Shown: positions 9,801 to 45,800, counted from the first letter of the stretch. The stretch: DNA of 64,000 nucleotides from Macrostomum hystrix (GCA_950097015.1 CATNEN010000025.1:6696001-6760000), one strand, 5' to 3'. The notes: a model not told the origin generated them from the letters alone. Made by a program: numbers and translations.

Positions 9801-12800
9801 CATGAGTTCGGGAGTTAATGAGTTCATGAGTTCGTGAGTTCGAGAGTTAATGAGTTCATGAGTTCGTGAGTTCGTGAGTTCGAGAGTTAATGAGTTTATG
9901 AGTTCGTGAGTTCGTGAATTCATGAGTTCGAGAGTTAATGAGTTTATGAGTTCGTGAGTTCGAGAGTTCGAGAGTTCGTGAGTTCATGAGTTCGTGAGTT
10001 CGTAAGTTCGAGAGTTCGTGAGTTTATGAGTTCGTGAGTTCGAGAGTTCGTGAGTTCATGAGTTCGTGAGTTCGTGAGTTCATGAGTTCGTGAGTTCGTG
10101 AGTTCATGAGTTCGTGAGTTCGTGAGTTCATGAGTTCGTGAGTTCATGAGTTCATGAGTTCGTGAGTTGGTGAGTTCATGAGTTCGCGAGTTCATGAGTT
10201 GGTGAGTTCATATGAGTTCTTAAGTCGAAAACAATATGATTTGATTAGATTTTTACAGCCCGAGTCCAGAAGTCCGTATGTTTGTGAGCGTAGTATGAGT
10301 GATTGACTTATCGTTTCCAGCGAAAACTCCAAGAGCTTTGCATCATGATGCACCTGGGAATCCAGCTCGGGTTCTCGCATTGCCCATTTCAGCCTCTTAT
10401 GCGGCACTGCATGGCTTTGTTAGCGATAAGGAAGCCTCAAGTCTAAGAGAACGAATGGCCTGCTCTCTTCCCTATTTGTGTCTCACCGGGGATTATTTCA
10501 GATTTCTATCGGACCGAGCGGCCTGTAAATAAGTCAGCGAAATGCTACCCTCGTAGGGGATCAGTGGGGACATGGGGAACTGAGTCGATGGGAGAAAATG
10601 GAACTGAGTCGATGGGAGAAAATGGAACTGAGTCGATGGGAGAAAATGGAACTGAGTCGATGGGAGAAAATGGAACTGAGTCGATGGGAGAAAATGGAAC
10701 TGAGTCGATTGGGAGAAAATGGAACTGAGTCGATGGGAGAAAATGGAACTGAGTCGATTGGGAGAAAATGGAACTGAGTCGATGGGAGAAATGGGAAGCA
10801 AGTCGATGGGAGAAATGGGAAGCGAGTCAATGGTAGCCTCACAAACTGTTCACCAGCAGGCTCAAACACAGCCGGCGGGTCCAACAGTCCCGGCTCAAAT
10901 GAGGACGACGTCGACGACGAGTCGCCTGGAGGCGCCGGCAGCGGCAGCGGCGTCGGCAGCGGCGGCGTCGGCTCTGACGCTGGCAGAGGTCCCGAGGAGC
11001 CTCAGAAGCCGCCACTGGAGTGAGCACTTATTTTGAATGATCTCTGAGGTTGAGTTAAATAAAGCAACAAAGTGGCCAAATAATGGACATTGTTTTGCCA
11101 TTTTTTTCAGCCCCAAGGAGTCGGCCAACATTCCGCTAATGCGCGTTTTTCAATCCATCAAGCAGACAAAGAAGCAGGGCTCCAGTGTGCTGCGCGAGAA
11201 CTGGCTGGTGTACTACACCGACCGCTGCGCCGAGGTACCGTAAGGGGATAATGCTGATAGAAAATTGCCATCAGAAAATACTGATACCCCTTTCACAGCT
11301 GTGTGAGTTGAAGCACTAGAAATTAAGTGTTTTACCTTCGATTACAAATAGTTTCCATTGCGGCTGGGAATCGAACTCGAGACCTTTCAGTTCAGCTCTA
11401 ATCGACGAAAATATAGAAAGAGCACAATCTTCAAAGCCTTGATAATCGCGGTAGTCACTAAGGGACAGAGGCAATTAATAAAGTGCACAATCAGGTTTGA
11501 TGGCCAGATTTGTAGAGTGCGAAGCACCAACGACCCCACAAGCCATGCCCCTAGCAGGTGACGACGGATTTTCATTTCAAAGGATGATTCAAGACAGACT
11601 GACCAAGAGAATTCTGCCCAAGCCTAGAGTCTAATTAATTAGTTTGGTCAGGACAGGCCGAAATATAAATCGGGCCCCATCAAGGCGAGCGTGACGTTGT
11701 GTTTGTGTGAGAGAGAGGGAGAGAGCGAAAGTGAGAGAAAAGCACCGAGCCGGGGATGGTTTGGGTGATTTTCTTTGAGAATATTTGCCCCATTCGCGGT
11801 CAAATTTTCCCAGCTACCGGGATTGCTGAACGTGACGCGGGATCCTTAGCTTAGTGCCGTTGAGTTTTGTGCTTCATCTATCCATCCCAACTAATTTGCA
11901 GCTTGAGACGTGCTTCCCGACTCGTCCGTTTCTCTGCTCCCTCATCTGCAACCTCATCTCTCTCTTCTCTCCCAACTCTTGTCTCTCATCTCATCTCTCT
12001 CTCTTGTCTCTCATCTCATCTCTCTCTTGTCTCTCACCTCATCTCTCTCTTCTCTCTCATCTCATCTCTGTCTTGTCTCCCAACTCATCTCTCTCTTCTC
12101 TCCCAACTCATCTCTCTCTTGTCTCTCACCTCCTCTCTCTCTTCTCTCCCAACTCATCTCTCTCTTGTCTCTCACCTCATCTCTCTCTTCTCTCCCAACT
12201 CATCTCTCTCTTGTCTCTCACCTCCTCTCTCTCTTCTCTCCCAACTCATCTCTCTCTTCTCTCTCACCTCATCTCCTTCTTGTCTCCCAACTTATCTCTC
12301 TCTTCTCTCTCACCTCATCTCTCTCTTCTCTCCCAACTCATCTCTCTCTTCTCTCTCACCTCATCTCTCTCTTCTCTCCCAACTCATCTCTCTCTTCTCT
12401 CCCAACTCATCTCTCTCTTCTCTCCCAACTCATCTCTCTCTTCTCTCCCAACTCACCTCTCTCTTCTCTCTCACCTCATCTCTTTCTTGTCTCCCAACTC
12501 ATCTCTCTCTTCTCTCCCAACTCATCTCTCTCTTCTCTCCCAACTCACCTCTCTCTTCTCTCTCACCTCATCTCTTTCTTGTCTCCCAACTCATCTCTCT
12601 CTTGTCTCCCAACTTATCTCTCTCTTGTCTCCCAACTCATCTCTCTCTTGTCTCCCAACTCATCTCTCTCTTGTCTCTCATCTTATCTCTTTCTTGTCTC
12701 TCATCTTATCTCTCTCTTGTCTCCCAACTCATCTCTCTCTTGTCTCTCACCTTATCTCTTTCTTGTCTCTCATCTCATCTCTCTCTTGTCTCCCAACTCA

Positions 12801-15800: not shown

Positions 15801-18800
15801 CTCTTGTCTCCCAACTCATCTCTCTCTTGTCTCCCAACTCATCTCTCTCTTGTCTCTCATCTTATCTCTTTCTTGTCTCCCAACTCATCTCTCTCTTGTC
15901 TCCCAACTCATCTCTCTCTTCTCTCCCAACTCACCTCATCTCTTTCTTGTCTCCCAACTCATCTCTCTCTTGTCTCCCAACTCATCTCTCTCTTGTCTCC
16001 CAACTCATCTCTCTCTTGTCTCCCAACTCATCTCTCTCTTGTCTCCCAACTCATCTCTCTCTTGTCTCCCAACTCATCTCTCTCTTGTCTCCCAACTCAT
16101 CTCTCTCTTCTCTCCCAACTCATCTCTCTCTTGTCTCTCACGTTATCTCTCTCTTCATTCCCATCTTATCTCTCTCTTCATTCCCATCTTATCTCTCTCT
16201 TCATTCCCATCTTATCTCTCTCTTCATTCCCATCTTATCTCTCTCTTCATTCCCATCTCATCTCTCTCTTCTCTCCCAACTCTTGTCTCTCATCTCATCT
16301 CTCTCTCTTGTCTCTCATCTCATCTCTCTCTTGTCTCTCACCTCATCTCTCTCTTCTCTCTCATCTCATCTCTGTCTTGTCTCTCATCTCATCTCTCTCT
16401 TCTCTCCCAACTCATCTCTCTCTTCTCTCCCAACTCATCTCTCTCTTGTCTCTCACCTCATCTCTCTCTTGTCTCCCAACTTATCTCTCTCTTCTCTCAC
16501 CTCATCTCTCTCTTGTCTCCCAACTCATCTCTCTCTTGTCTCTCACCTCATCTCTGTCTTGTCTCCCAACTCATCTCTCTCTTGTCTCCCAACTCATCTC
16601 TCTCTTGTCTCCCAACTCATCTCTCTCTTGTCTCCCAACTCATCTCTCTCTTCTCTCCCAACTCATCTCTCTCTTGTCTCTCATCTTATCTCTTTCTTGT
16701 CTCTCATCTTATCTCTCTCTTGTCTCCCAACTCATCTCTCTCTTCTCTCCCAACTCATCTCTCTCTTCTCTCCCAACTCATCTCTCTCTTGTCTCCCAAC
16801 TTATCTCTCTCTTCTCTCCCAACTCATCTCTCTCTTCTCTCTCACCTCATCTCCTTCTTGTCTCCCAACTTATCTCTCTCTTCTCTCTCACCTCATCTCT
16901 CTCTTCTCTCCCAACTCATCTCTCTCTTCTCTCTCACCTCATCTCTCTCTTCTCTCCCAACTCATCTCTCTCTTCTCTCCCAACTCATCTCTCTCTTCTC
17001 TCCCAACTCATCTCTCTCTTCTCTCCCAACTCACCTCTCTCTTCTCTCTCACCTCATCTCTTTCTTGTCTCCCAACTCATCTCTCTCTTGTCTCCCAACT
17101 CATCTCTCTCTTGTCTCCCAACTCATCTCTCTCTTGTCTCCCAACTCATCTCTCTCTTGTCTCCCAACTCATCTCTCTCTTGTCTCCCAACTCATCTCTC
17201 TCTTGTCTCCCAACTCATCTCTCTCTTGTCTCTCATCTTATCTCTTTCTTGTCTCTCATCTTATCTCTCTCTTGTCTCCCAACTCATCTCTCTCTTGTCT
17301 CCCAACTCATCTCTCTCTTGTCTCTCATCTTATCTCTTTCTTGTCTCCCAACTCATCTCTCTCTTCTCTCCCAACTCACCTCATCTCTCTCTTGTCTCCC
17401 AACTCATCTCTCTCTTGTCTCCCAACTCATCTCTCTCTTGTCTCCCAACTCATCTCTCTCTTGTCTCCCAACTCATCTCTCTCTTGTCTCCCAACTCATC
17501 TCTCTCTTGTCTCCCAACTCATCTCTCTCTTGTCTCCCAACTCATCTCTCTCTTCTCTCCCAACTCATCTCTCTCTTGTCTCTCACGTTATCTCTCTCTT
17601 CATTCCCATCTTATCTCTCTCTTCATTCCCATCTTATCTCTCTCTTCATTCCCATCTTATCTCTCTCTTCATTCCCATCTTATCTCTCTCTTCATTCCCA
17701 TCTCATCTCTCTCTTCTCTCCCAACTCTTGTCTCTCATCTCATCTCTCTCTCTCTTGTCTCTCATCTCATCTCTCTCTTGTCTCTCACCTCATCTCTCTC
17801 TTCTCTCTCATCTCATCTCTGTCTTGTCTCTCATCTCATCTCTCTCTTCTCTCCCAACTCATCTCTCTCTTCTCTCCCAACTCATCTCTCTCTTGTCTCT
17901 CACCTCATCTCTCTCTTGTCTCCCAACTTATCTCTCTCTTCTCTCACCTCATCTCTCTCTTGTCTCCCAACTCATCTCTCTCTTGTCTCTCACCTCATCT
18001 CTGTCTTGTCTCCCAACTCATCTCTCTCTTGTCTCTCATCTCATCTCTCTCTTCTCTCCCAACTCATCTCTCTCTTCTCTCCCAACTCATCTCTCTCTTG
18101 TCTCTCACCTCATCTCTCTCTTGTCTCCCAACTTATCTCTCTCTTCTCTCACCTCATCTCTCTCTTGTCTCCCAACTCATCTCTCTCTTGTCTCCCAACT
18201 CATCTCTCTCTTCTCTCCCAACTCATCTCTCTCTTGTCTCTCATCTTATCTCTTTCTTGTCTCTCATCTTATCTCTCTCTTGTCTCCCAACTCATCTCTC
18301 TCTTCTCTCCCAACTCATCTCTCTCTTCTCTCCCAACTCATCTCTCTCTTGTCTCCCAACTTATCTCTCTCTTCTCTCCCAACTCATCTCTCTCTTCTCT
18401 CTCACCTCATCTCCTTCTTGTCTCCCAACTTATCTCTCTCTTCTCTCTCACCTCATCTCTCTCTTCTCTCCCAACTCATCTCTCTCTTCTCTCTCACCTC
18501 ATCTCTCTCTTCTCTCCCAACTCATCTCTCTCTTCTCTCCCAACTCATCTCTCTCTTCTCTCCCAACTCATCTCTCTCTTCTCTCCCAACTCACCTCTCT
18601 CTTCTCTCTCACCTCATCTCTTTCTTGTCTCCCAACTCATCTCTCTCTTGTCTCCCAACTCATCTCTCTCTTGTCTCCCAACTCATCTCTCTCTTGTCTC
18701 CCAACTCATCTCTCTCTTCTCTCCCAACTCATCTCTCTCTTGTCTCTCATCTTATCTCTTTCTTGTCTCTCATCTTATCTCTCTCTTGTCTCCCAACTCA

Positions 18801-21800
18801 TCTCTCTCTTCTCTCCCAACTCATCTCTCTCTTCTCTCCCAACTCATCTCTCTCTTGTCTCCCAACTTATCTCTCTCTTCTCTCCCAACTCATCTCTCTC
18901 TTCTCTCTCACCTCATCTCCTTCTTGTCTCCCAACTTATCTCTCTCTTCTCTCTCACCTCATCTCTCTCTTCTCTCCCAACTCATCTCTCTCTTCTCTCT
19001 CACCTCATCTCTCTCTTCTCTCCCAACTCATCTCTCTCTTCTCTCCCAACTCATCTCTCTCTTCTCTCCCAACTCATCTCTCTCTTCTCTCCCAACTCAC
19101 CTCTCTCTTCTCTCTCACCTCATCTCTTTCTTGTCTCCCAACTCATCTCTCTCTTGTCTCCCAACTCATCTCTCTCTTGTCTCCCAACTCATCTCTTTCT
19201 TGTCTCCCAACTCATCTCTCTCTTGTCTCCCAACTCATCTCTCTCTTGTCTCCCAACTCATCTCTCTCTTGTCTCCCAACTCATCTCTCTCTTGTCTCCC
19301 AACTCATCTCTCTCTTGTCTCTCATCTTATCTCTTTCTTGTCTCTCATCTTATCTCTCTCTTGTCTCCCAACTCATCTCTCTCTTGTCTCCCAACTCATC
19401 TCTCTCTTGTCTCTCATCTTATCTCTTTCTTGTCTCCCAACTCATCTCTCTCTTCTCTCCCAACTCACCTCATCTCTTTCTTGTCTCCCAACTCATCTCT
19501 CTCTTGTCTCCCAACTCATCTCTCTCTTGTCTCCCAACTCATCTCTCTCTTGTCTCCCAACTCATCTCTCTCTTGTCTCCCAACTCATCTCTCTCTTCTC
19601 TCCCAACTCATCTCTCTCTTGTCTCTCACGTTATCTCTCTCTTCATTCCCATCTTATCTCTCTCTTCATTCCCATCTTATCTCTCTCTTCATTCCCATCT
19701 TATCTCTCTCTTCATTCCCATCTTATCTCTCTCTTCATTCCCATCTCATCTCTCTCTTCTCTCCCAACTCTTGTCTCTCATCTCATCTCTCTCTCTTGTC
19801 TCTCATCTCATCTCTCTCTTGTCTCTCACCTCATCTCTCTCTTCTCTCTCATCTCATCTCTGTCTTGTCTCTCATCTCATCTCTCTCTTCTCTCCCAACT
19901 CATCTCTCTCTTCTCTCCCAACTCATCTCTCTCTTGTCTCTCACCTCATCTCTCTCTTGTCTCCCAACTTATCTCTCTCTTCTCTCACCTCATCTCTCTC
20001 TTGTCTCCCAACTCATCTCTCTCTTGTCTCTCACCTCATCTCTGTCTTGTCTCCCAACTCATCTCTCTCTTGTCTCCCAACTCATCTCTCTCTTGTCTCC
20101 CAACTTATCTCTCTCTTGTCTCCCAACTTATCTCTCTCTTCTCTCCCAACTCATCTCTCTCTTGTCTCTCATCTTATCTCTTTCTTGTCTCTCATCTTAT
20201 CTCTCTCTTGTCTCCCAACTCATCTCTCTCTTCTCTCCCAACTCATCTCTCTCTTCTCTCCCAACTCATCTCTCTCTTGTCTCTCACCTCCTCTCTCTCT
20301 TCTCTCCCAACTCATCTCTCTCTTGTCTCCCAACTCATCTCTCTCTTGTCTCTCATCTTATCTCTCTCTTGTCTCCCAACTCATCTCTCTCTTGTCTCCC
20401 AACTCATCTCTCTCTTGTCTCTCATCTTATCTCTCTCTTGTCTCCCAACTTATCTCTCTCTTCTCTCCCAACTCATCTCTCTCTTCTCTCCCAACTCACC
20501 TCTCTCTTCTCTCTCACCTCATCTCTTTCTTGTCTCCCAACTCATCTCTCTCTTGTCTCCCAACTCATCTCTCTCTTGTCTCCCAACTCATCTCTCTCTT
20601 GTCTCCCAACTCATCTCTCTCTTGTCTCCCAACTCATCTCTCTCTTGTCTCCCAACTCATCTCTCTCTTGTCTCCCAACTTATCTCTCTCTTCTCTCCCA
20701 ACTCATCTCTCTCTTCTCTCTCACCTCATCTCTCTCTTCTCTCCCAACTCATCTCTCTCTTCTCTCTCACCTCATCTCTCTCTTCTCTCCCAACTCATCT
20801 CTCTCTTCTCTCTCACCTCATCTCTCTCTTCTCTCCCAACTCATCTCTCTCTTCTCTCCCAACTCATCTCTCTCTTCTCTCCCAACTCATCTCTCTCTTC
20901 TCTCCCAACTCACCTCTCTCTTCTCTCTCACCTCATCTCTTTCTTGTCTCCCAACTCATCTCTCTCTTGTCTCCCAACTTATCTCTCTCTTGTCTCCCAA
21001 CTCATCTCTCTCTTGTCTCCCAACTCATCTCTCTCTTGTCTCCCAACTCATCTCTCTCTTGTCTCCCAACTCATCTCTCTCTTGTCTCTCATCTTATCTC
21101 TTTCTTGTCTCTCATCTTATCTCTCTCTTGTCTCCCAACTCATCTCTCTCTTGTCTCCCAACTCATCTCTCTCTTGTCTCTCATCTTATCTCTTTCTTGT
21201 CTCCCAACTCATCTCTCTCTTGTCTCCCAACTCATCTCTCTCTTCTCTCCCAACTCACCTCATCTCTTTCTTGTCTCCCAACTCATCTCTCTCTTGTCTC
21301 CCAACTCATCTCTCTCTTGTCTCCCAACTCATCTCTCTCTTGTCTCCCAACTCATCTCTCTCTTGTCTCCCAACTCATCTCTCTCTTCTCTCCCAACTCA
21401 CCTCATCTCTTTCTTGTCTCCCAACTCATCTCTCTCTTGTCTCCCAACTCATCTCTCTCTTGTCTCCCAACTCATCTCTCTCTTGTCTCCCAACTCATCT
21501 CTCTCTTGTCTCCCAACTCATCTCTCTCTTGTCTCCCAACTCATCTCTCTCTTCTCTCCCAACTCATCTCTCTCTTGTCTCTCACGTTATCTCTCTCTTC
21601 ATTCCCATCTTATCTCTCTCTTCATTCCCATCTTATCTCTCTCTTCATTCCCATCTTATCTCTCTCTTTATTCCCATCTTATCTCTCTCTTCATTCCCAT
21701 CTCATCTCTCTCTTCTCTCCCAACTCTTGTCTCTCATCTCATCTCTCTCTCTTGTCTCTCATCTCATCTCTCTCTTGTCTCTCACCTCATCTCTCTCTTC

Positions 21801-24800
21801 TCTCTCATCTCATCTCTGTCTTGTCTCTCATCTCATCTCTCTCTTCTCTCCCAACTCATCTCTCTCTTGTCTCCCAACTCATCTCTCTCTTGTCTCTAAC
21901 TTCATCTCTCTCTTGTCTCCCAACTTATCTCTCTCTTCTCTCACCTCATCTCTCTCTTGTCTCCCAACTCATCTCTCTCTTGTCTCTCACCTCATCTCTG
22001 TCTTCTCTCCCAACTCATCTCTCTCTTGTCTCCCAACTTATCTCTCTCTTCTCTCCCAACTCATCTCTCTCTTCTCTCTCACCTCATCTCCTTCTTGTCT
22101 CCCAACTTATCTCTCTCTTCTCTCTCACCTCATCTCTCTCTTCTCTCCCAACTCATCTCTCTCTTCTCTCTCACCTCATCTCTCTCTTCTCTCCCAACTC
22201 ATCTCTCTCTTGTCTCTCATCTTATCTCTTTCTTGTCTCTCATCTTATCTCTCTCTTGTCTCCCAACTCATCTTTCTCTTCTCTCCCAACTCATCTCTCT
22301 CTTCTCTCCCAACTCATCTCTCTCTTGTCTCTCACCTCCTCTCTCTCTTCTCTCCCAACTCATCTCTCTCTTGTCTCCCAACTTATCTCTCTCTTCTCTC
22401 CCAACTCATCTCTCTCTTCTCTCTCACCTCATCTCCTTCTTGTCTCCCAACTTATCTCTCTCTTCTCTCTCACCTCATCTCTCTCTTCTCTCCCAACTCA
22501 TCTCTCTCTTCTCTCTCACCTCATCTCTCTCTTCTCTCCCAACTCATCTCTCTCTTCTCTCCCAACTTATCTCTCTCTTCTCTCCCAACTCATCTCTCTC
22601 TTCTCTCCCAACTCACCTCTCTCTTCTCTCTCACCTCATCTCTTTCTTGTCTCCCAACTCATCTCTCTCTTGTCTCCCAACTCATCTCTCTCTTGTCTCT
22701 CATCTTATCTCTCTCTTGTCTCCCAACTCATCTCTCTCTTGTCTCCCAACTCATCTCTCTCTTGTCTCTCATCTTATCTCTTTCTTGTCTCTCATCTTAT
22801 CTCTCTCTTGTCTCCCAACTCATCTCTCTCTTGTCTCCCAACTCATCTCTCTCTTGTCTCTCACCTCATCTCTTTCTTGTCTCCCAACTCATCTCTCTCT
22901 TGTCTCCCAACTTATCTCTCTCTTGTCTCCCAACTCATCTCTCTCTTGTCTCCCAACTCATCTCTCTCTTGTCTCTCATCTTATCTCTTTCTTGTCTCCC
23001 AACTCATCTCTCTCTTGTCTCCCAACTCATCTCTCTCTTCTCTCCCAACTCACCTCATCTCTTTCTTGTCTCCCAACTCATCTCTCTCTTGTCTCCCAAC
23101 TCATCTCTCTCTTGTCTCCCAACTCATCTCTCTCTTGTCTCCCAACTCATCTCTCTCTTGTCTCCCAACTCATCTCTCTCTTGTCTCCCAACTCATCTCT
23201 CTCTTGTCTCCCAACTCATCTCTTTCTTGTCTCTCATCTTATCTCTCTCTTCTCTCCCAACTCATCTCTCTCTTCTCTCCCAACTCATCTCTCTCTTCTC
23301 TCCCAACTCATCTCTCTCTTCTCTCCCAACTCATCTCTCTCTTGTCTCCCAACTCATCTCTCTCTTGTCTCCCAACTCATCTCTCTCTTGTCTCTCATCT
23401 TATCTCTCTCTTGTCTCCCAACTCATCTCTCTCTTGTCTCCCAACTCATCTCTCTCTTGTCTCTCATCTTATCTCTCTCTTGTCTCCCAACTTATCTCTC
23501 TCTTCTCTCCCAACTCATCTCTCTCTTCTCTCTCACCTCATCTCCTTCTTGTCTCCCAACTTATCTCTCTCTTCTCTCTCACCTCATCTCTCTCTTCTCT
23601 CCCAACTCATCTCTCTCTTCTCTCTCACCTCATCTCTCTCTTCTCTCCCAACTCATCTCTCTCTTCTCTCCCAACTTATCTCTCTCTTCTCTCCCAACTC
23701 ATCTCTCTCTTCTCTCCCAACTCACCTCTCTCTTCTCTCTCACCTCATCTCTTTCTTGTCTCCCAACTCATCTCTCTCTTGTCTCCCAACTCATCTCTCT
23801 CTTGTCTCTCATCTTATCTCTCTCTTGTCTCCCAACTCATCTCTCTCTTGTCTCCCAACTCATCTCTCTCTTGTCTCTCATCTTATCTCTTTCTTGTCTC
23901 TCATCTTATCTCTCTCTTGTCTCCCAACTCATCTCTCTCTTGTCTCCCAACTCATCTCTCTCTTGTCTCTCACCTCATCTCTTTCTTGTCTCCCAACTCA
24001 TCTCTCTCTTGTCTCCCAACTTATCTCTCTCTTGTCTCCCAACTCATCTCTCTCTTGTCTCCCAACTCATCTCTCTCTTGTCTCTCATCTTATCTCTTTC
24101 TTGTCTCCCAACTCATCTCTCTCTTGTCTCCCAACTCATCTCTCTCTTCTCTCCCAACTCACCTCATCTCTTTCTTGTCTCCCAACTCATCTCTCTCTTG
24201 TCTCCCAACTCATCTCTCTCTTGTCTCCCAACTCATCTCTCTCTTGTCTCCCAACTCATCTCTCTCTTGTCTCCCAACTCATCTCTCTCTTGTCTCCCAA
24301 CTCATCTCTCTCTTGTCTCCCAACTCATCTCTCTCTTGTCTCTCATCTTATCTCTTTCTTGTCTCTCATCTTATCTCTCTCTTGTCTCCCAGCTCATCTC
24401 TCTCTTGTCTCCCAACTCATCTCTCTCTTGTCTCCCAACTCATCTCTTTCTTGTCTCTCATCTTATCTCTCTCTTGTCTCCCAACTCATCTCTCTCTTGT
24501 CTCCCAACTTATCTCTCTCTTCTCTCCCAACTCATCTCTCTCTTGTCTCCCAACTTATCTCTCTCTTCTCTCTCATCTCATCTCTGTCTTGTCTCCCAAC
24601 TCATCTCTCTCTTCTCTCCCAACTCATCTCTCTCTTCTCTCCCAACTCATCTCTCTCTTGTCTCCCAACTCATCTCTCTCTTCTCTCCCAACTCATCTCT
24701 CTCTTCTCTCCCAACTCATCTCTCTCTTCTCTCCCAACTCATCTCTCTCTTCTCTCTCACCTCATCTCTCTCTTCTCTCCCAACTCATCTCTCTCTTCTC

Positions 24801-27800
24801 TCCCAACTCATCTCTCTCTTCTCTCCCAACTCACCTCTCTCTTCTCTCTCACCTCATCTCTTTCTTGTCTCCCAACTCATCTCTCTCTTGTCTCTCACGT
24901 TATCTCTCTCTTCATTCCCATCTTATCTCTCTCTTCATTCCCATCTTATCTCTCTCTTCATTCCCATCTTATCTCTCTCTTCATTCCCATCTTATCTCTC
25001 TCTTTATTCCCATCTTATCTCTCTCTTCATTCCCATCTTATCTCTCTCTTCATTCCCAACTTATCTCTCTCTTCTCTCCCAACTCATCTCTCTCTTCTCT
25101 CCCAACTCATCTCTCTCTTCTCTCCCAACTCATCTCTCTCTTGTCTCTCACCTCATCTCTCTCTTCTCTCCCAACTCATCTCTCTCTTGTCTCCCAACTT
25201 ATCTCTCTCTTCTCTCCCAACTCATCTCTCTCTTCTCTCTCACCTCATCTCCTTCTTGTCTCCCAACTTATCTCTCTCTTCTCTCTCACCTCATCTCTCT
25301 CTTCTCTCCCAACTCATCTCTCTCTTCTCTCTCACCTCATCTCTCTCTTCTCTCCCAACTCATCTCTCTCTTCTCTCCCAACTCATCTCTCTCTTCTCTC
25401 CCAACTCATCTCTCTCTTCTCTCCCAACTCACCTCTCTCTTCTCTCTCACCTCATCTCTTTCTTGTCTCCCAACTCATCTCTCTCTTGTCTCCCAACTCA
25501 TCTCTCTCTTGTCTCCCAACTTATCTCTCTCTTCTCTCCCAACTCATCTCTCTCTTCTCTCTCACCTCATCTCCTTCTTGTCTCCCAACTTATCTCTCTC
25601 TTCTCTCTCACCTCATCTCTCTCTTCTCTCCCAACTCATCTCTCTCTTCTCTCTCACCTCATCTCTCTCTTCTCTCCCAACTCATCTCTCTCTTCTCTCC
25701 CAACTCATCTCTCTCTTCTCTCCCAACTCATCTCTCTCTTCTCTCCCAACTCACCTCTCTCTTCTCTCTCACCTCATCTCTTTCTTGTCTCCCAACTCAT
25801 CTCTCTCTTGTCTCCCAACTCATCTCTCTCTTGTCTCCCAACTCATCTCTCTCTTGTCTCCCAACTCATCTCTCTCTTGTCTCCCAACTCATCTCTCTCT
25901 TGTCTCCCAACTCATCTCTCTCTTGTCTCCCAACTCATCTCTCTCTTGTCTCTCATCTTATCTCTTTCTTGTCTCTCATCTTATCTCTCTCTTGTCTCCC
26001 AACTCATCTCTCTCTTGTCTCCCAACTCATCTCTCTCTTGTCTCTCATCTTATCTCTTTCTTGTCTCCCAACTCATCTCTCTCTTCTCTCCCAACTCACC
26101 TCATCTCTTTCTTGTCTCCCAACTCATCTCTCTCTTGTCTCCCAACTCATCTCTCTCTTGTCTCCCAACTCATCTCTCTCTTGTCTCCCAACTCATCTCT
26201 CTCTTGTCTCCCAACTCATCTCTCTCTTGTCTCCCAACTCATCTCTCTCTTCTCTCCCAACTCATCTCTCTCTTGTCTCTCACGTTATCTCTCTCTTCAT
26301 TCCCATCTTATCTCTCTCTTCATTCCCATCTTATCTCTCTCTTCATTCCCATCTTATCTCTCTCTTCATTCCCATCTTATCTCTCTCTTCATTCCCATCT
26401 CATCTCTCTCTTCTCTCCCAACTCATCTCTCTCTTGTCTCCCAACTCATCTCTCTCTTGTCTCCCAACTCATCTCTCTCTTGTCTCCCAACTCATCTCTC
26501 TCTTGTCTCCCAACTCATCTCTCTCTTGTCTCCCAACTCATCTCTCTCTTGTCTCCCAACTCATCTCTCTCTTCTCTCCCAACTCATCTCTCTCTTGTCT
26601 CTCACGTTATCTCTCTCTTCATTCCCATCTTATCTCTCTCTTCATTCCCATCTTATCTCTCTCTTCATTCCCATCTTATCTCTCTCTTCATTCCCATCTT
26701 ATCTCTCTCTTCCTTCCCATCTCATCTCTCTCTTCTCTCCCAACTCTTGTCTCTCATCTCATCTCTCTCTCTTGTCTCTCATCTCATCTCTCTCTTGTCT
26801 CTCACCTCATCTCTCTCTTCTCTCTCATCTCATCTCTGTCTTGTCTCTCATCTCATCTCTCTCTTCTCTCCCAACTCATCTCTCTCTTCTCTCCCAACTC
26901 ATCTCTCTCTTGTCTCTCACCTCATCTCTCTCTTGTCTCCCAACTTATCTCTCTCTTCTCTCACCTCATCTCTCTCTTGTCTCCCAACTCATCTCTCTCT
27001 TGTCTCTCACCTCATCTCTGTCTTGTCTCCCAACTCATCTCTCTCTTGTCTCCCAACTCATCTCTCTCTTGTCTCCCAACTCATCTCTCTCTTGTCTCCC
27101 AACTCATCTCTCTCTTCTCTCCCAACTCATCTCTCTCTTGTCTCTCATCTTATCTCTTTCTTGTCTCTCATCTTATCTCTCTCTTGTCTCCCAACTCATC
27201 TCTCTCTTCTCTCCCAACTCATCTCTCTCTTCTCTCCCAACTCATCTCTCTCTTGTCTCCCAACTTATCTCTCTCTTCTCTCCCAACTCATCTCTCTCTT
27301 CTCTCTCACCTCATCTCCTTCTTGTCTCCCAACTTATCTCTCTCTTCTCTCTCACCTCATCTCTCTCTTCTCTCCCAACTCATCTCTCTCTTCTCTCTCA
27401 CCTCATCTCTCTCTTCTCTCCCAACTCATCTCTCTCTTCTCTCCCAACTCATCTCTCTCTTCTCTCCCAACTCATCTCTCTCTTCTCTCCCAACTCACCT
27501 CTCTCTTCTCTCTCACCTCATCTCTTTCTTGTCTCCCAACTCATCTCTCTCTTGTCTCCCAACTCATCTCTCTCTTGTCTCCCAACTCATCTCTCTCTTG
27601 TCTCCCAACTCATCTCTCTCTTCTCTCCCAACTCATCTCTCTCTTGTCTCTCATCTTATCTCTTTCTTGTCTCTCATCTTATCTCTCTCTTGTCTCCCAA
27701 CTCATCTCTCTCTTCTCTCCCAACTCATCTCTCTCTTCTCTCCCAACTCATCTCTCTCTTGTCTCCCAACTTATCTCTCTCTTCTCTCCCAACTCATCTC

Positions 27801-30800: not shown

Positions 30801-33800
30801 TAACCTCATCTCTCTCTTGTCTCCCAACTTATCTCTCTCTTCTCTCACCTCATCTCTCTCTTGTCTCCCAACTCATCTCTCTCTTGTCTCTCACCTCATC
30901 TCTGTCTTGTCTCCCAACTCATCTCTCTCTTGTCTCCCAACTCATCTCTCTCTTGTCTCCCAACTTATCTCTCTCTTGTCTCCCAACTCATCTCTCTCTT
31001 CTCTCCCAACTCATCTCTCTCTTGTCTCTCATCTTATCTCTTTCTTGTCTCTCATCTTATCTCTCTCTTGTCTCCCAACTCATCTCTCTCTTCTCTCCCA
31101 ACTCATCTCTCTCTTCTCTCCCAACTCATCTCTCTCTTGTCTCTCACCTCCTCTCTCTCTTCTCTCCCAACTCATCTCTCTCTTGTCTCCCAACTTATCT
31201 CTCTCTTCTCTCCCAACTCATCTCTCTCTTCTCTCTCACCTCATCTCCTTCTTGTCTCCCAACTTATCTCTCTCTTCTCTCTCACCTCATCTCTCTCTTC
31301 TCTCCCAACTCATCTCTCTCTTCTCTCTCACCTCATCTCTCTCTTCTCTCCCAACTCATCTCTCTCTTGTCTCTCATCTTATCTCTTTCTTGTCTCTCAT
31401 CTTATCTCTCTCTTGTCTCCCAACTCATCTTTCTCTTCTCTCCCAACTCATCTCTCTCTTCTCTCCCAACTCATCTCTCTCTTGTCTCTCACCTCCTCTC
31501 TCTCTTCTCTCCCAACTCATCTCTCTCTTGTCTCCCAACTTATCTCTCTCTTCTCTCCCAACTCATCTCTCTCTTCTCTCTCACCTCATCTCCTTCTTGT
31601 CTCCCAACTTATCTCTCTCTTCTCTCTCACCTCATCTCTCTCTTCTCTCCCAACTCATCTCTCTCTTCTCTCTCACCTCATCTCTCTCTTCTCTCCCAAC
31701 TCATCTCTCTCTTCTCTCCCAACTTATCTCTCTCTTCTCTCCCAACTCATCTCTCTCTTCTCTCCCAACTCACCTCTCTCTTCTCTCTCACCTCATCTCT
31801 TTCTTGTCTCCCAACTCATCTCTCTCTTGTCTCCCAACTCATCTCTCTCTTGTCTCTCATCTTATCTCTCTCTTGTCTCCCAACTCATCTCTCTCTTGTC
31901 TCCCAACTCATCTCTCTCTTGTCTCTCATCTTATCTCTTTCTTGTCTCTCATCTTATCTCTCTCTTGTCTCCCAACTCATCTCTCTCTTGTCTCCCAACT
32001 CATCTCTCTCTTGTCTCTCACCTCATCTCTTTCTTGTCTCCCAACTCATCTCTCTCTTGTCTCCCAACTTATCTCTCTCTTGTCTCCCAACTCATCTCTC
32101 TCTTGTCTCCCAACTCATCTCTCTCTTGTCTCTCATCTTATCTCTTTCTTGTCTCCCAACTCATCTCTCTCTTGTCTCCCAACTCATCTCTCTCTTCTCT
32201 CCCAACTCACCTCATCTCTTTCTTGTCTCCCAACTCATCTCTCTCTTGTCTCCCAACTCATCTCTCTCTTCTCTCCCAACTCATCTCTCTCTTGTCTCCC
32301 AACTCATCTCTCTCTTGTCTCCCAACTCATCTCTCTCTTGTCTCCCAACTCATCTCTCTCTTGTCTCCCAACTCATCTCTTTCTTGTCTCTCATCTTATC
32401 TCTCTCTTCTCTCCCAACTCATCTCTCTCTTCTCTCCCAACTCATCTCTCTCTTCTCTCCCAACTCATCTCTCTCTTCTCTCCCAACTCATCTCTCTCTT
32501 GTCTCCCAACTCATCTCTCTCTTGTCTCCCAACTCATCTCTCTCTTGTCTCTCATCTTATCTCTCTCTTGTCTCCCAACTCATCTCTCTCTTGTCTCCCA
32601 ACTCATCTCTCTCTTGTCTCTCATCTTATCTCTCTCTTGTCTCCCAACTTATCTCTCTCTTCTCTCCCAACTCATCTCTCTCTTCTCTCTCACCTCATCT
32701 CCTTCTTGTCTCCCAACTTATCTCTCTCTTCTCTCTCACCTCATCTCTCTCTTCTCTCCCAACTCATCTCTCTCTTCTCTCTCACCTCATCTCTCTCTTC
32801 TCTCCCAACTCATCTCTCTCTTCTCTCCCAACTTATCTCTCTCTTCTCTCCCAACTCATCTCTCTCTTCTCTCTCACCTCATCTCTCTCTTCTCTCCCAA
32901 CTCATCTCTCTCTTCTCTCCCAACTTATCTCTCTCTTCTCTCCCAACTTATCTCTCTCTTCTCTCTCACCTCATCTCTCTCTTCTCTCCCAACTCATCTC
33001 TCTCTTCTCTCCCAACTCATCTCTCTCTTCTCTCCCAACTCACCTCTCTCTTCTCTCTCACCTCATCTCTTTCTTGTCTCCCAACTCATCTCTCTCTTGT
33101 CTCCCAACTCATCTCTCTCTTGTCTCTCATCTTATCTCTCTCTTGTCTCCCAACTCATCTCTCTCTTGTCTCCCAACTCATCTCTCTCTTGTCTCTCATC
33201 TTATCTCTTTCTTGTCTCTCATCTTATCTCTCTCTTGTCTCCCAACTCATCTCTCTCTTGTCTCTCACCTCATCTCTTTCTTGTCTCCCAACTCATCTCT
33301 CTCTTGTCTCCCAACTTATCTCTCTCTTGTCTCCCAACTCATCTCTCTCTTGTCTCCCAACTCATCTCTCTCTTGTCTCCCAACTCATCTCTTTCTTGTC
33401 TCTCATCTTATCTCTCTCTTGTCTCCCAACTCATCTCTCTCTTGTCTCCCAACTTATCTCTCTCTTCTCTCCCAACTCATCTCTCTCTTGTCTCCCAACT
33501 CATCTCTCTCTTGTCTCTCATCTTATCTCTTTCTTGTCTCTCATCTTATCTCTCTCTTGTCTCCCAACTCATCTCTCTCTTGTCTCCCAACTCATCTCTC
33601 TCTTGTCTCTCACCTCATCTCTTTCTTGTCTCCCAACTCATCTCTCTCTTGTCTCCCAACTTATCTCTCTCTTGTCTCCCAACTCATCTCTCTCTTGTCT
33701 CCCAACTCATCTCTCTCTTGTCTCTCATCTTATCTCTTTCTTGTCTCCCAACTCATCTCTCTCTTGTCTCCCAACTCATCTCTCTCTTCTCTCCCAACTC

Positions 33801-36800
33801 ACCTCATCTCTTTCTTGTCTCCCAACTCATCTCTCTCTTGTCTCCCAACTCATCTCTCTCTTCTCTCCCAACTCATCTCTCTCTTGTCTCCCAACTCATC
33901 TCTCTCTTGTCTCCCAACTCATCTCTCTCTTGTCTCCCAACTCATCTCTCTCTTGTCTCCCAACTCATCTCTTTCTTGTCTCTCATCTTATCTCTCTCTT
34001 CTCTCCCAACTCATCTCTCTCTTCTCTCCCAACTCATCTCTCTCTTCTCTCCCAACTCATCTCTCTCTTCTCTCCCAACTCATCTCTCTCTTGTCTCCCA
34101 ACTCATCTCTCTCTTGTCTCCCAACTCATCTCTCTCTTGTCTCTCATCTTATCTCTCTCTTGTCTCCCAACTTATCTCTCTCTTGTCTCCCAACTCATCT
34201 CTCTCTTGTCTCTCATCTTATCTCTCTCTTGTCTCCCAACTTATCTCTCTCTTCTCTCCCAACTCATCTCTCTCTTCTCTCTCACCTCATCTCCTTCTTG
34301 TCTCCCAACTTATCTCTCTCTTCTCTCTCACCTCATCTCTCTCTTCTCTCCCAACTCATCTCTCTCTTCTCTCTCACCTCATCTCTCTCTTCTCTCCCAA
34401 CTCATCTCTCTCTTCTCTCCCAACTTATCTCTCTCTTCTCTCCCAACTCATCTCTCTCTTCTCTCTCACCTCATCTCTCTCTTCTCTCCCAACTCATCTC
34501 TCTCTTCTCTCCCAACTTATCTCTCTCTTCTCTCCCAACTTATCTCTCTCTTCTCTCTCACCTCATCTCTCTCTTCTCTCCCAACTCATCTCTCTCTTCT
34601 CTCCCAACTCATCTCTCTCTTCTCTCCCAACTCACCTCTCTCTTCTCTCTCACCTCATCTCTTTCTTGTCTCCCAACTCATCTCTCTCTTGTCTCCCAAC
34701 TCATCTCTCTCTTGTCTCTCATCTTATCTCTCTCTTGTCTCCCAACTCATCTCTCTCTTGTCTCCCAACTCATCTCTCTCTTGTCTCTCATCTTATCTCT
34801 TTCTTGTCTCTCATCTTATCTCTCTCTTGTCTCCCAACTCATCTCTCTCTTGTCTCTCACCTCATCTCTTTCTTGTCTCCCAACTCATCTCTCTCTTGTC
34901 TCCCAACTTATCTCTCTCTTGTCTCCCAACTCATCTCTCTCTTGTCTCCCAACTCATCTCTCTCTTGTCTCTCATCTTATCTCTTTCTTGTCTCCCAACT
35001 CATCTCTCTCTTGTCTCCCAACTCATCTCTCTCTTCTCTCCCAACTCACCTCATCTCTTTCTTGTCTCCCAACTCATCTCTCTCTTGTCTCCCAACTCAT
35101 CTCTCTCTTGTCTCCCAACTCATCTCTCTCTTGTCTCCCAACTCATCTCTCTCTTGTCTCCCAACTCATCTCTCTCTTGTCTCCCAACTCATCTCTCTCT
35201 TGTCTCCCAACTCATCTCTCTCTTGTCTCTCATCTTATCTCTTTCTTGTCTCTCATCTTATCTCTCTCTTGTCTCCCAGCTCATCTCTCTCTTGTCTCCC
35301 AACTCATCTCTCTCTTGTCTCCCAACTCATCTCTTTCTTGTCTCTCATCTTATCTCTCTCTTGTCTCCCAACTCATCTCTCTCTTGTCTCCCAACTTATC
35401 TCTCTCTTCTCTCCCAACTCATCTCTCTCTTGTCTCCCAACTTATCTCTCTCTTCTCTCTCATCTCATCTCTGTCTTGTCTCCCAACTCATCTCTCTCTT
35501 CTCTCCCAACTCATCTCTCTCTTCTCTCCCAACTCATCTCTCTCTTGTCTCCCAACTCATCTCTCTCTTCTCTCCCAACTCATCTCTCTCTTCTCTCCCA
35601 ACTCATCTCTCTCTTCTCTCCCAACTCATCTCTCTCTTCTCTCTCACCTCATCTCTCTCTTCTCTCCCAACTCATCTCTCTCTTCTCTCCCAACTCATCT
35701 CTCTCTTCTCTCCCAACTCACCTCTCTCTTCTCTCTCACCTCATCTCTTTCTTGTCTCCCAACTCATCTCTCTCTTGTCTCTCACGTTATCTCTCTCTTC
35801 ATTCCCATCTTATCTCTCTCTTCATTCCCATCTTATCTCTCTCTTCATTCCCATCTTATCTCTCTCTTCATTCCCATCTTATCTCTCTCTTTATTCCCAT
35901 CTTATCTCTCTCTTCATTCCCATCTTATCTCTCTCTTCATTCCCAACTTATCTCTCTCTTCTCTCCCAACTCATCTCTCTCTTCTCTCCCAACTCATCTC
36001 TCTCTTCTCTCCCAACTCATCTCTCTCTTGTCTCTCACCTCATCTCTCTCTTCTCTCCCAACTCATCTCTCTCTTGTCTCCCAACTTATCTCTCTCTTCT
36101 CTCCCAACTCATCTCTCTCTTCTCTCTCACCTCATCTCCTTCTTGTCTCCCAACTTATCTCTCTCTTCTCTCTCACCTCATCTCTCTCTTCTCTCCCAAC
36201 TCATCTCTCTCTTCTCTCTCACCTCATCTCTCTCTTCTCTCCCAACTCATCTCTCTCTTCTCTCCCAACTCATCTCTCTCTTCTCTCCCAACTCATCTCT
36301 CTCTTCTCTCCCAACTCACCTCTCTCTTCTCTCTCACCTCATCTCTTTCTTGTCTCCCAACTCATCTCTCTCTTGTCTCCCAACTCATCTCTCTCTTGTC
36401 TCCCAACTTATCTCTCTCTTCTCTCCCAACTCATCTCTCTCTTGTCTCCCAACTCATCTCTCTCTTGTCTCCCAACTCATCTCTCTCTTGTCTCTCATCT
36501 TATCTCTTTCTTGTCTCTCATCTTATCTCTCTCTTGTCTCCCAACTCATCTCTCTCTTGTCTCCCAACTCATCTCTCTCTTGTCTCTCATCTTATCTCTT
36601 TCTTGTCTCCCAACTCATCTCTCTCTTGTCTCCCAACTCATCTCTCTCTTCTCTCCCAACTCACCTCATCTCTTTCTTGTCTCCCAACTCATCTCTCTCT
36701 TGTCTCCCAACTCATCTCTCTCTTCTCTCCCAACTCACCTCATCTCTTTCTTGTCTCCCAACTCATCTCTCTCTTGTCTCCCAACTTATCTCTCTCTTGT

Positions 36801-42800: not shown

Positions 42801-45800
42801 ATCTCTTTCTTGTCTCCCAACTCATCTCTCTCTTCTCTCCCAACTCACCTCATCTCTTTCTTGTCTCCCAACTCATCTCTCTCTTGTCTCCCAACTCATC
42901 TCTCTCTTGTCTCCCAACTCATCTCTCTCTTGTCTCCCAACTCATCTCTCTCTTGTCTCCCAACTCATCTCTCTCTTGTCTCCCAACTCATCTCTCTCTT
43001 CTCTCCCAACTCATCTCTCTCTTGTCTCTCACGTTATCTCTCTCTTCATTCCCATCTTATCTCTCTCTTCATTCCCATCTTATCTCTCTCTTCATTCCCA
43101 TCTTATCTCTCTCTTCATTCCCATCTTATCTCTCTCTTCATTCCCATCTCATCTCTCTCTTCATTCCCATCTTATCTCTCTCTTCATTCCCATCTCATCT
43201 CTCTCTTCATTCCCATCTTATCTCTCTCTTCATTCCCATCTTATCTCTCTCTTCATTCCCATCTTATCTCTCTCTTCATTCCCATCTTATCTCTCTCTTC
43301 ATTCCCATCTTATCTCTCTCTTCATTCCCATCTCATCTCTCTCTTCATTCCCATCTTATCTCTCTCTTCATTCCCATCTTATCTCTCTCTTCATTCCCAT
43401 CTTATCTCTCTCTTCATTCCCATCTTATCTCTCTCTTCATTCCCATCTTATCTCTCTCTTCATTCCCATCTCATCTCTCTCTTCATTCCCATCTTATCCC
43501 TCTCTTCATTCCCATCTTATCTCTCTCTTCATTCCCACCTTATCTCTCAATCCAACTCGTCACCTTAAATTAGTATTTTCTGCCTGCTTTAATTTCAATG
43601 CCAGGTCTCTAATCGCGCCTCCATCTTATCTAAGTTATTTTGCGCTCCAATTTAAAAACAGAACAATCATGCTTATTAAGCCGCTATCCTGCCATTGTGT
43701 TCAGCTGCGCGCACGGCAGTGTTTTTCTGCTATTTCCTAAAGTACCGCATTCAACAGGCCTCGAGAAGGAAAAGGCTTCCCAGGGTTCTGTGGACTGTCT
43801 CTCTCCCTGAAACATTCGCCCTAAAAACAATCCTATATTGCTCAAACGCGAACAGCATCCCCCAATTTCATTTTCAGATAGTCCGTCTCGTATTTTCCCG
43901 GCCTGCCAACCAGAAAAAAAGCTGCCATAAAAAATAAACAGCTGAAAATTCCCTTAGAGACGAAATCCCGCCACCAACCGGTGTTTTTTAGATGGGCAAA
44001 TTATTAACAAATTTGAAATGATTTCCGTTTTAATTATGCTGCTGCTAATCTGAAACTCGATTAACGACTCGCCAATCGACCATTGGCAATCCAGATGAGG
44101 CGTCACTTCTGGAGGCTGGACTCTCGGGGACTGACTCTCTACCCCGACGAAGCCACTAATCGATATTACAAGGTGAGAAATCGTACACACATTGTTTCAT
44201 ATTAATTATGGAGTTGAAATTCAATGCGTTTTTTTTTAAAACCAACGATTTTTACGATGTATTAGGATGTTTTTTAAAAGATGTCGATATACTGTCTACC
44301 CGATTGCTTCCCAATTTTGACACTGGAATTTGTCATATCTCATAGCCGCTCTATATAACTTGTCTTATAACTTGTATATAACTTGACACCCGGCAAATCA
44401 CCCATGCCACTATCTGGCGTGTCTGAGCACAGCTGAGCTGTGCTTTAAAAATGATTGATCGACTTGAGTCTATATGCTCAGTCTGTATTTATGGCCGCAT
44501 TAACTCCAGAAATCGCTTGTATATATACTCGTACTAGCTTTTTTTGCCCGTTGTTTTTGGGGCAGAAATTTAAAGCAAAGCAGTAAACAATTCACGTCTC
44601 TGTATTAACTTTATAGTGAAGGTCACCATTTATTTATTTACTGCATTAATGAAAAGTGAAGAGTTTGTTTAAGGGCGTTTTAAGTAAAAAAAAGTGAAAA
44701 GTTTGTCCAAACAGCCCCCTCTTGATTACTTCTTTAGAAACATGTCTCTTAGCCACTCCTCTATACAGTCAGTGGCAGATCCAGGAATTTTGTTTTGGGG
44801 CGGTCTGTCAGGGGAGCGCCATGAGAATCACAGAGGGGGTGCCAGCGGCCGAAAAAGGGCGCCAGGAGCCAAGAAAGGGCGCCAGCGGCTGAAAAACGGG
44901 AGCCAGCGGCTGAAAAAGGGGCGCCAGCGGCCGAAAAGGGGCGCCAGTGCTGCGACTGGCGCCCCTGGTGGGGGCATCTTATTCCCATGATTAAAATTTG
45001 GGGGGGGCGACTGCCCCACGCCCCCCCCCCCTAAATCTGCCTCTGTATACAGTATGCATGTACACGCGTATACATAAGGAAAATAGCCATGGCATAACAA
45101 TAACAATGTCAAAGAAACAAAATTAAACTGTTTCAGAGTTCAGAGTTAGACAGGTCAAGGTCAATTCGTGACTACTTTTCTATTAATTGCTTGCGAGTCA
45201 CCTCAAGGCCTGGGGATACACCACATTCTTCGTTCTTCCCCTTGGTGCGAAAATGAATAGGCCAGCTGGAGTTCCAACACGGGAGCAGGCAACATAAAGC
45301 TGCCCATGCGAGAAGCAAGGAGTCTCCAGGTTGATGCCAGCCACCTTCAGCGACTGTCCCTGAGCCTTGTTAATAGTCATCGCAAAGCACACTCTCACAG
45401 GGAACTGCAGTCGCTTGAACTGAAATGGCAGGTCCGTGGGGATAATTGGAATCCGGGAACGAACACAGACTCTCCTCTGCCAGATCCAGTCATTATCGTG
45501 GCCTCAATCACGTGTGGGAAGAGCCGCCTGACTATCAGTCTGGTGCCGTTACACAGCCTTGGCGCATTCAGGTTGCGGAGGAGCATAATTGGTGCCCCAA
45601 CTTTCAGCTGCAAGTTGTGCGATGGAGTTCCAGGAGGATCTAGAGAGTTCAGAAACTCAACAGGATACTCCACAGCGGTGTCATCAGTCAACGTTGTATC
45701 AATTGACTTGTAGGTGAAAACTGCACCTGGCAACTCCTGAAGCAGTTGGTAGTTAATTTCGTTGGCGGCATCATTTCTAGGACACAGAATTGCCCTCTCT

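Follow-up and report, generated by a model that had tools for sequence, protein, structure and literature searches.

A giant, locus-specific minisatellite in a predicted intron of the protein kinase D gene of the flatworm Macrostomum hystrix

A tandem array of a 23-nt unit, 31.6 kb in length, occupies nearly all of a predicted intron of the gene for protein kinase D (PKD/PRKD) in Macrostomum hystrix, between two exons that encode neighbouring segments of the PH domain. All positions given here refer to the window, that is, the whole 64,000-nt stretch of contig CATNEN010000025.1 that we analysed (C25:6,696,001-6,760,000), taken from a single assembly of 220 Mb in 42 contigs. The reading that we favour, with a probability of about 0.7, is that the array is genuine but incidental to function, a giant intronic minisatellite, or variable-number tandem repeat (VNTR), which lies at the far tail of a process that acts across this genome.

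The array extends over 11959-43548 on the plus strand (31,590 nt, about 1,365 units). At period 23, Tandem Repeats Finder (TRF) places it at 11959-43529, with 1365.0 copies, 90% matches and a score of 25,745, while at periods 46 and 69 the tract runs over 11976-43548, with scores of 46,742 and 43,403, respectively. Its period falls within the range of about 10-100 nt that defines a minisatellite, with the units arranged head to tail. There are no Ns in the window. The sense (plus) strand is 85% pyrimidine (C 43.0%, T 42.4%, A 11.9%, G 2.7%), and the GC skew stays at about -0.88 throughout. The most frequent unit is CTCCCAACTCATCTCTCTCTTGT; when the whole genome was searched for it with at most one mismatch, 774 matches were obtained on one strand only, and 774 of 774 lie inside the array. 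Looser CT-rich look-alikes of the unit are present elsewhere in the genome. The array is locus-specific rather than a member of a dispersed satellite family. Similarly, the idea that it belongs to a transposon was rejected: its flanks are unique in the genome, and the array is therefore not part of a dispersed element. The only part of these flanks that recurs is a 110-nt SINE-like (short interspersed nuclear element) or tRNA-like piece at 11277-11386, with five other loci in the genome at 72-74% identity, and tRNA and Rfam scans gave no match in intron 6.

The array represents 96.1% of the 32,860-nt interval that runs from the GT at 11235 to the AG at 44093-44094. A previous reading, made from the sequence alone, had proposed an intron of this length, about 96% of it filled by some 1,370 copies of one 23-nt unit in a tract with a homopurine/homopyrimidine bias. 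The length, the proportion, the strand bias and, approximately, the copy number all hold; the notion of one unit is a simplification, as the units belong to 47 types, the commonest of which accounts for 36%.

What places this interval inside a gene is the protein sequence encoded on either side of it. Exon 6 (11111-11234, plus strand), which codes for the linker and for the first part of the PH domain, follows the acceptor tttttttcag (11101-11110) and ends on a complete codon; it was delimited by translation, tblastn and blastp against 141 PKD proteins, and its translation (11112-11234) reads PKESAN...YYTDRCAE. Exon 7 (44095-44172, plus strand), a further PH-domain segment, has a translation ending in NRYYK and is followed by the donor GTGAGA. 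Between them, the predicted intron 6 consists of a unique 5' part of 724 nt (11235-11958), which opens with the donor GTACCG after the exonic GAG, the array itself, and a unique 3' part of 546 nt (43549-44094), which is single copy in the genome and closes with the acceptor ...ggcaatccag. As a reference we used the PKD3-like protein of Ptychodera flava (P0001), the best full-length PKD recovered when exon 3 was searched against 1.8 billion representative proteins. On this protein, exon 6 corresponds to residues 345-387 (aligned over 345-384 and projected to 387) and exon 7 to residues 388-413 (aligned over 389-413). Moreover, in all 141 PKD proteins of other animals that match both exons by blastp, exon 7 begins exactly one residue after the end of exon 6. 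Exon 7 also matches the PH-domain structures 2coa (human PKD2, E = 6e-6) and 2d9z (PKD3, E = 1e-5) in the PDB, at chain residues 25-49, while exon 6 alone, which is too short, matches neither. This exact adjacency in 141 of 141 proteins means that exons 6 and 7 are consecutive, with nothing missing between them and a break in phase 0, as had been proposed from the sequence alone. By this gene model, the array lies wholly within one intron of a protein-coding gene.

Searching the window with P0001 by tblastn recovered a colinear gene on the plus strand, composed of C1a, C1a/C1b, C1b, linker, PH, kinase and C-terminus. Exons 2-4 (2099-2204, 3949-4290 and 4373-4459, plus strand) encode C1a and C1b, are supported by tblastn and splice sites, and match Pfam C1_1 with E values of 2.5e-7, 6.6e-10 and 2.2e-4, the first two above the curated cut-off; these exons for two tandem C1 domains, of the type that binds diacylglycerol and phorbol esters, are colinear with residues 107-275 of P0001. 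The kinase exons (49527-49907, 50786-50860 and 51627-51734, plus strand) were placed by tblastn, Pfam Pkinase and splice sites. The first of them scores 111 bits against Pfam Pkinase and is 69% identical to the Ptychodera PKD3-like protein, compared with at most 46% for all other kinase loci of the genome, in agreement with a CAMK-group Ser/Thr kinase domain that is closest to those of PKDs. Pfam PH alone did not reach significance on the short exon pieces. The one PKD feature not recovered is the N-terminal ubiquitin-like dimerisation domain: residues 1-106 of P0001 were unmatched by tblastn in the window and in a search of the worm's own genome, and the domain could have diverged too far to be recognised, or be encoded further upstream than the window reaches. 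The earlier proposal of a 2.4-kb coding sequence spread over 56 kb is plausible from the exon map, although one or more N-terminal exons were not recovered. A whole-genome search with P0001 revealed no second PKD in the 220 Mb, and the unique sequences that flank exons 6 and 7 are each found a single time. Homeologous copies, which the sequence-only reading had suggested for comparing array lengths, are therefore not available in this assembly. Judged from its C1, PH and kinase exons, the gene is predicted to be an intact, single-copy PKD, and being both intact and single copy, it would have to be expressed across intron 6.

The interior of the array is not a homogeneous run. Cut into its units, it yields 1,362 of them, 94% of exactly 23 nt and the whole set spanning 14-28 nt; read as a string of unit types, it is a structured mosaic. 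A truncated 14-nt unit serves as a marker: it stands at the extreme 5' edge of the array (11969) and reappears, together with the same four following units, at 16273, 17718, 19761, 21717, 26737, 28665 and 30621. Most of the internal copies of this marker lie directly 3' of a run of units identical to the array's own 3' end. The array thus holds eight macro-copies of an earlier, smaller array, spaced 1.4-5 kb apart. On a larger scale, k-mer diagonal analysis identified a segmental duplication of about 10 kb, with block A at 15950-25556 and its near-identical copy, block B, at 26414-36443 (both on the plus strand). The two blocks share matched stretches of up to 3,748 nt at 99.9-100% identity, at offsets from 8,904 to 10,887 nt that vary because indels separate the copies. 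Besides these indels, a few substitutions separate the two blocks, and rare variants occur in register in both; for example, a rare CAG variant at 24391 is found again at 35278, exactly one offset of 10,887 away. Both edges of the array decay gradually into unique sequence. Taken together, the decayed edges, the macro-copies and the near-identical duplicates argue that the array was born in place and grew recently and stepwise; unequal exchange or slippage is the mechanism to which they point. Internal duplicates as similar as these (99.9-100% identity) imply a recent change in copy number, and the architecture suggests that the length of the array is unstable.

How unusual is such a structure in this genome? 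We sampled two arbitrarily chosen 100-kb blocks together with the window, 264 kb in all. Tandem arrays with a period of at least 7 cover 26-27% of the two blocks, in which TRF reports 111 arrays, the largest of 2.35 kb; the second-largest array of the window measures 3.3 kb. The intron 6 array, at 31.6 kb, thus stands against 135 other arrays in the sample, none of which exceeds 3.3 kb; the ratio is given as at least 13-fold. The PKD gene itself reflects the same pattern, with its two introns that lack arrays being only 82 nt (4291-4372) and 93 nt (11018-11110) long and those that carry arrays reaching 1.7, about 6.4, 4.7 and 32.9 kb. In the congener M. lignano, simple and tandem repeats make up 15% of the genome, and the mean intron length is 1.1-1.4 kb (PMC5730564). 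In the sampled genome, then, this kind of feature is ordinary and only its size is extreme. As introns inflated by minisatellites are common here, a neutral origin becomes the default explanation.

Some further observations concern the neighbouring arrays. Each of the larger PKD introns owes most of its length to arrays. Three arrays of the window, at 1002-1216, 1673-1842 and 4654-5068, have units of 35-37 nt built on a common GGGTGGGTGCAA core; not every array in the region is private, and some are local families that span different introns. In addition, 16-nt CT-rich arrays with the unit CCCTGTCTCATCTCTC occur on another contig, C2, near 2.01 and 2.03 Mb (L019:265-1498 and L021:2902-3321), a hint that a CT-rich minisatellite motif may recur in the genome.

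According to the explanation that we favour, a 23-nt repeat would have arisen in place in the phase-0 intron between the first two PH-domain segments, and would then have expanded to 31.6 kb through repeated unequal exchange or replication slippage, including duplication of whole sub-arrays and of the block of about 10 kb. This would be one instance of a genome-wide process in which otherwise tiny introns each gain a tandem array of their own. The gene probably tolerates the array for three reasons. First, the splice sites would lie outside it, in 0.5-0.7 kb of unique sequence. Second, the transcribed orientation is CU-rich and carries almost no disruptive RNA-processing signals. Indeed, the sense strand of the array contains 3 AG and 840 GT dinucleotides (827 of the latter in GTC), and no GTRAG, no AATAAA and no acceptor motif made of a pyrimidine tract plus AG, while the antisense reading holds 8,771 AG and 236 GTRAG; with so few sense signals, the array holds hardly anything that cryptic splicing or premature polyadenylation could use. 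Third, R-loops are favoured by G-rich or purine-rich RNA, and a C-rich non-template strand, such as that of the array, is the least prone to form them. The main consequence of the expansion would be some 32 kb of extra transcription for each mRNA, which at the elongation rates usual in other animals takes minutes to tens of minutes. It is tempting to speculate that the inertness of the founding unit may explain why this array in particular could grow so large.

Several observations weigh against this reading. The array is a strong size outlier, and that the tail from which it comes is purely neutral is an assumption. Near-identical internal duplicates of 10 kb could also result from an assembly error in a repeat. 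With respect to tolerance, the inert composition goes back to the founding unit and offers no evidence of selection: of the 56 substitutions inferred between unit types, a single one gives rise to an AG, where about two to three would be expected, and this is not a significant depletion. We had also entertained the idea that selection keeps intronic arrays free of splice signals, and rejected it, as the other PKD arrays are rich in sense AG and GT, one of them with 25 GTRAG. The splice sites raise a further difficulty. At the end of exon 6, the donor GTACCG departs from the consensus, with no G at +5 where one is usual, and 5 nt further downstream (11240-11245) there is a GTAAGG that looks like a better site. 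Moreover, three protein-database searches, made with the exon 6 open reading frame (ORF), with a full-length PKD and with a profile that combined a nematode PKD and four window exons, each on a row of its own, returned no Macrostomum PKD or transcript; the best matches to the window exons are at most 65% identical.

As for the junction, a second AG is present at 44098-44099, 5 nt inside exon 7, and if it were paired with the GTAAGG at 11240 the frame would be kept, with Val-Pro replacing Met-Arg; mixed use of the two pairs would shift the frame. Homology favours a predicted junction at 11234/44095 over the shifted pair because the basic residue at that point is conserved. Other predicted donors of the PKD gene, such as GTATCA and GTTTCA, are non-consensus as well.

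The likeliest of the alternatives is that a real array has been assembled with a wrong length or internal order, through collapse, expansion or false duplication, or, at worst, that its flanks have been misjoined. Blocks of about 10 kb at 99.9-100% identity are a known kind of hazard for an assembler. However, the flanking exons are exactly consecutive in all 141 PKDs that match both, and the exons that come after them are in the right order and on the same strand, which makes a misjoin very unlikely. The assembly is also highly contiguous, with no gap in the window, and the two blocks look biological, with their indels, few substitutions and rare variants in register. We consider an artefact of this kind unlikely.

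The closest known system, among large intronic VNTRs, is the VNTR in intron 3 of human CACNA1C ('TRACT'), which has a 30-bp unit, ranges from 3 to more than 30 kb, and whose length and sequence variants have been linked to disease risk and neuronal responses (10.1101/311795, PMC13131567). Like the PKD array, it is locus-specific, has a unit of tens of bases, sits in one intron of a signalling gene, reaches tens of kilobases and contains many unit variants arranged in structured blocks; the PKD array is an extreme member of that kind. In contrast, the CACNA1C VNTR is an exception in the human genome and comes with association and functional data, whereas the PKD array is exceptional in its own genome only for its size. 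A looser analogy is provided by the Drosophila genes kl-2, kl-3 and kl-5, in which tandem repeats likewise form nearly the whole of an intron that RNA polymerase II (Pol II) must cross. The sequence-only reading had invoked this precedent, and the need for dedicated factors is borne out by the work of Fingerhut et al. in 2019, who showed that the Y-loop genes require the RNA-binding proteins Blanks and Heph, a PTB homologue (PMC6508621). However, the fly introns span hundreds of kilobases to megabases and are made of 5-7-nt satellites, compared with 32,860 nt and a 23-nt unit for PKD. The fly satellites are Y-linked and shared with other heterochromatin, while the PKD unit is private and its surroundings are gene-dense, exon-bearing and about 26% minisatellite, like the rest of the genome sampled. 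Finally, the fly genes belong to a testis-specific programme, while other animals make broad use of PKD as a kinase. Nearer at hand, other arrays of the Macrostomum genome resemble the PKD array in that a short unique intron core is combined with its own tandem array, although the PKD array does not hug its donor, as it starts 724 nt after it.

Could the array be other than neutral? Two ideas can be considered: that its length is selected because it sets the output or timing of PKD, or that its CU-rich RNA persists after excision and titrates a PTB-type splicing regulator, possibly aided by pairing with the array of intron 4. Even when both are allowed for, a non-neutral array seems distinctly improbable.

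The first idea, already put forward by the sequence-only reading, holds that array length works as a polymorphic timer or rheostat, with 32 kb of structure-prone repeat delaying or throttling PKD mRNA and selection acting on the length. For the part of the gene that is in the window, the array makes the primary transcript more than twice as long. Since RNA polymerase elongates at 1-4 kb/min in other animals, 33 kb would add roughly 8-30 min of transcription to each mRNA. Homopyrimidine mirror repeats number 59 in the array when overlaps are excluded; their arms measure 14-16 nt and their spacer 7 nt. Pure pyrimidine runs reach 22 nt, and 454 of these runs are 17 nt long. These mirror repeats, of the H-DNA type, could slow the polymerase and give a partial basis in sequence to the triplex potential that had been proposed. 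The very recent internal duplications imply that the length varies, and both the Drosophila Y-loop genes and the CACNA1C VNTR can be quoted as precedents. On the other hand, R-loops, the other structure that had been suggested, run in the wrong direction for sense transcription: the sense RNA of the array is G-poor and pyrimidine-rich, so that its orientation would disfavour R-loops and even minimise them. Similar arrays fill introns so commonly in this genome that no special explanation is needed, and there is no known need for a delayed expression of PKD. We found no support for a role as a timer or rheostat, and regard it as very doubtful.

The second idea is that the RNA of the array is functional, as a CU-rich scaffold or sponge that sequesters polypyrimidine-tract-binding (PTB) proteins and that may pair with the intron 4 array, looping out exons 5-6. 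The array carries 1,720 TCTT and 2,502 CTCTCT motifs. A precedent exists in PNCTR, a long non-coding RNA (lncRNA) made of pyrimidine-rich short tandem repeats that sequesters PTBP1 (PMC6224606) and that, like the PKD array, has very dense UCUU and CUCUCU motifs on one transcribed strand. In addition, the fly genes with gigantic introns require the PTB homologue Heph (PMC6508621). The resemblance to PNCTR has a limit, since PNCTR is a stable lncRNA derived from Pol I with demonstrated binding to PTBP1, while the RNA of the PKD array is a predicted excised intron. The intron 4 array (5654-9093, plus strand) is 3.4 kb long, has a period of 23 and is purine-rich (GA-rich), so that together with the intron 6 array it brackets exons 5-6 in the pre-mRNA. 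Its unit is identical in register to the reverse complement of a main-array variant at 17 of 23 positions (shuffle P = 0.006), the two arrays align at about 62% over 3.4 kb in inverted orientation only, and RNAduplex gives -57 kcal/mol for the pair against -40 for shuffles. However, the similarity ranks only fourth among 71 real arrays, behind unrelated CT-rich arrays on other contigs, and a specific inverted pair of introns 4 and 6 was rejected; the likeness, as far as sequence comparison goes, is probably a shared CT/GA-rich compositional motif. CT-rich arrays are moreover common in this genome, the case for binding is motif-based only, and intronic RNA is normally short-lived. A functional array RNA is, in our view, highly improbable. 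As a separate observation, the CCCTGTCTCATCTCTC arrays on C2 are closer to the intron 6 array than the intron 4 array is.

Finally, a reading of the array as one giant exon that codes for a Ser/Leu-rich repeat protein can be dismissed. ORFs of 10,628 and 10,568 amino acids do pass through it, but the three sense frames are all open for no other reason than the lack of stop triplets in the unit (2 TAA, 0 TAG and 0 TGA in 31.6 kb). Moreover, a period of 23 cannot be divided by 3, the frame is shifted repeatedly by units that vary from 14 to 28 nt, there is no ATG in the array, and the flanking exons join perfectly without it. These artefactual ORFs, which extend over 11836-43737 on the plus strand in three frames and reach 10,628 codons, represent a trap for ORF-based gene callers.

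The functionally incidental minisatellite that we favour is a clean, extreme case of intronic minisatellite growth inside an intact, single-copy and conserved gene. It also exposes the interior of such an array, with nested duplications of the whole array and near-identical blocks of 10 kb. As the genus of flatworms in which it is found is capable of transgenesis, it could become a test case for how splicing and Pol II deal with tens of kilobases of CU-rich repeat. Other possible uses are as a hypervariable marker and as a stress test for assemblies and gene annotation, given its artefactual ORF of 10,000 codons. If array length did modulate the expression of PKD, the concept of expression-modifying VNTRs, developed in humans, would reach invertebrates. 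Similarly, should the array prove to be non-neutral, a regenerating flatworm would possess, in the form of a hypervariable repeat within an intron, a tunable regulator of one of its conserved signalling kinases.

The remaining features of the window complete the predicted gene. The exon 8 region (48854 to about 49456, plus strand), defined by tblastn, open frames and splice sites, would encode the rest of the PH domain, the linker and the start of the kinase. Within it, the linker between PH and kinase (48960-49250) is a long low-complexity stretch rich in Gly, Ala and Ser, with no counterpart in the other PKDs aligned. The late kinase region has a candidate pair of alternative exons, recognised by tblastn at 53538-53627 and 54840-54926 (plus strand), which are 27% and 76% identical to P0001, respectively. 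The exon for the C-terminus is predicted at 56487-56594 on the plus strand, from tblastn and splice sites. Outside the gene model, a tRNA-like sequence on the minus strand (60076-60146), not called by ARAGORN, reaches the Rfam tRNA gathering score with 30.1 bits.

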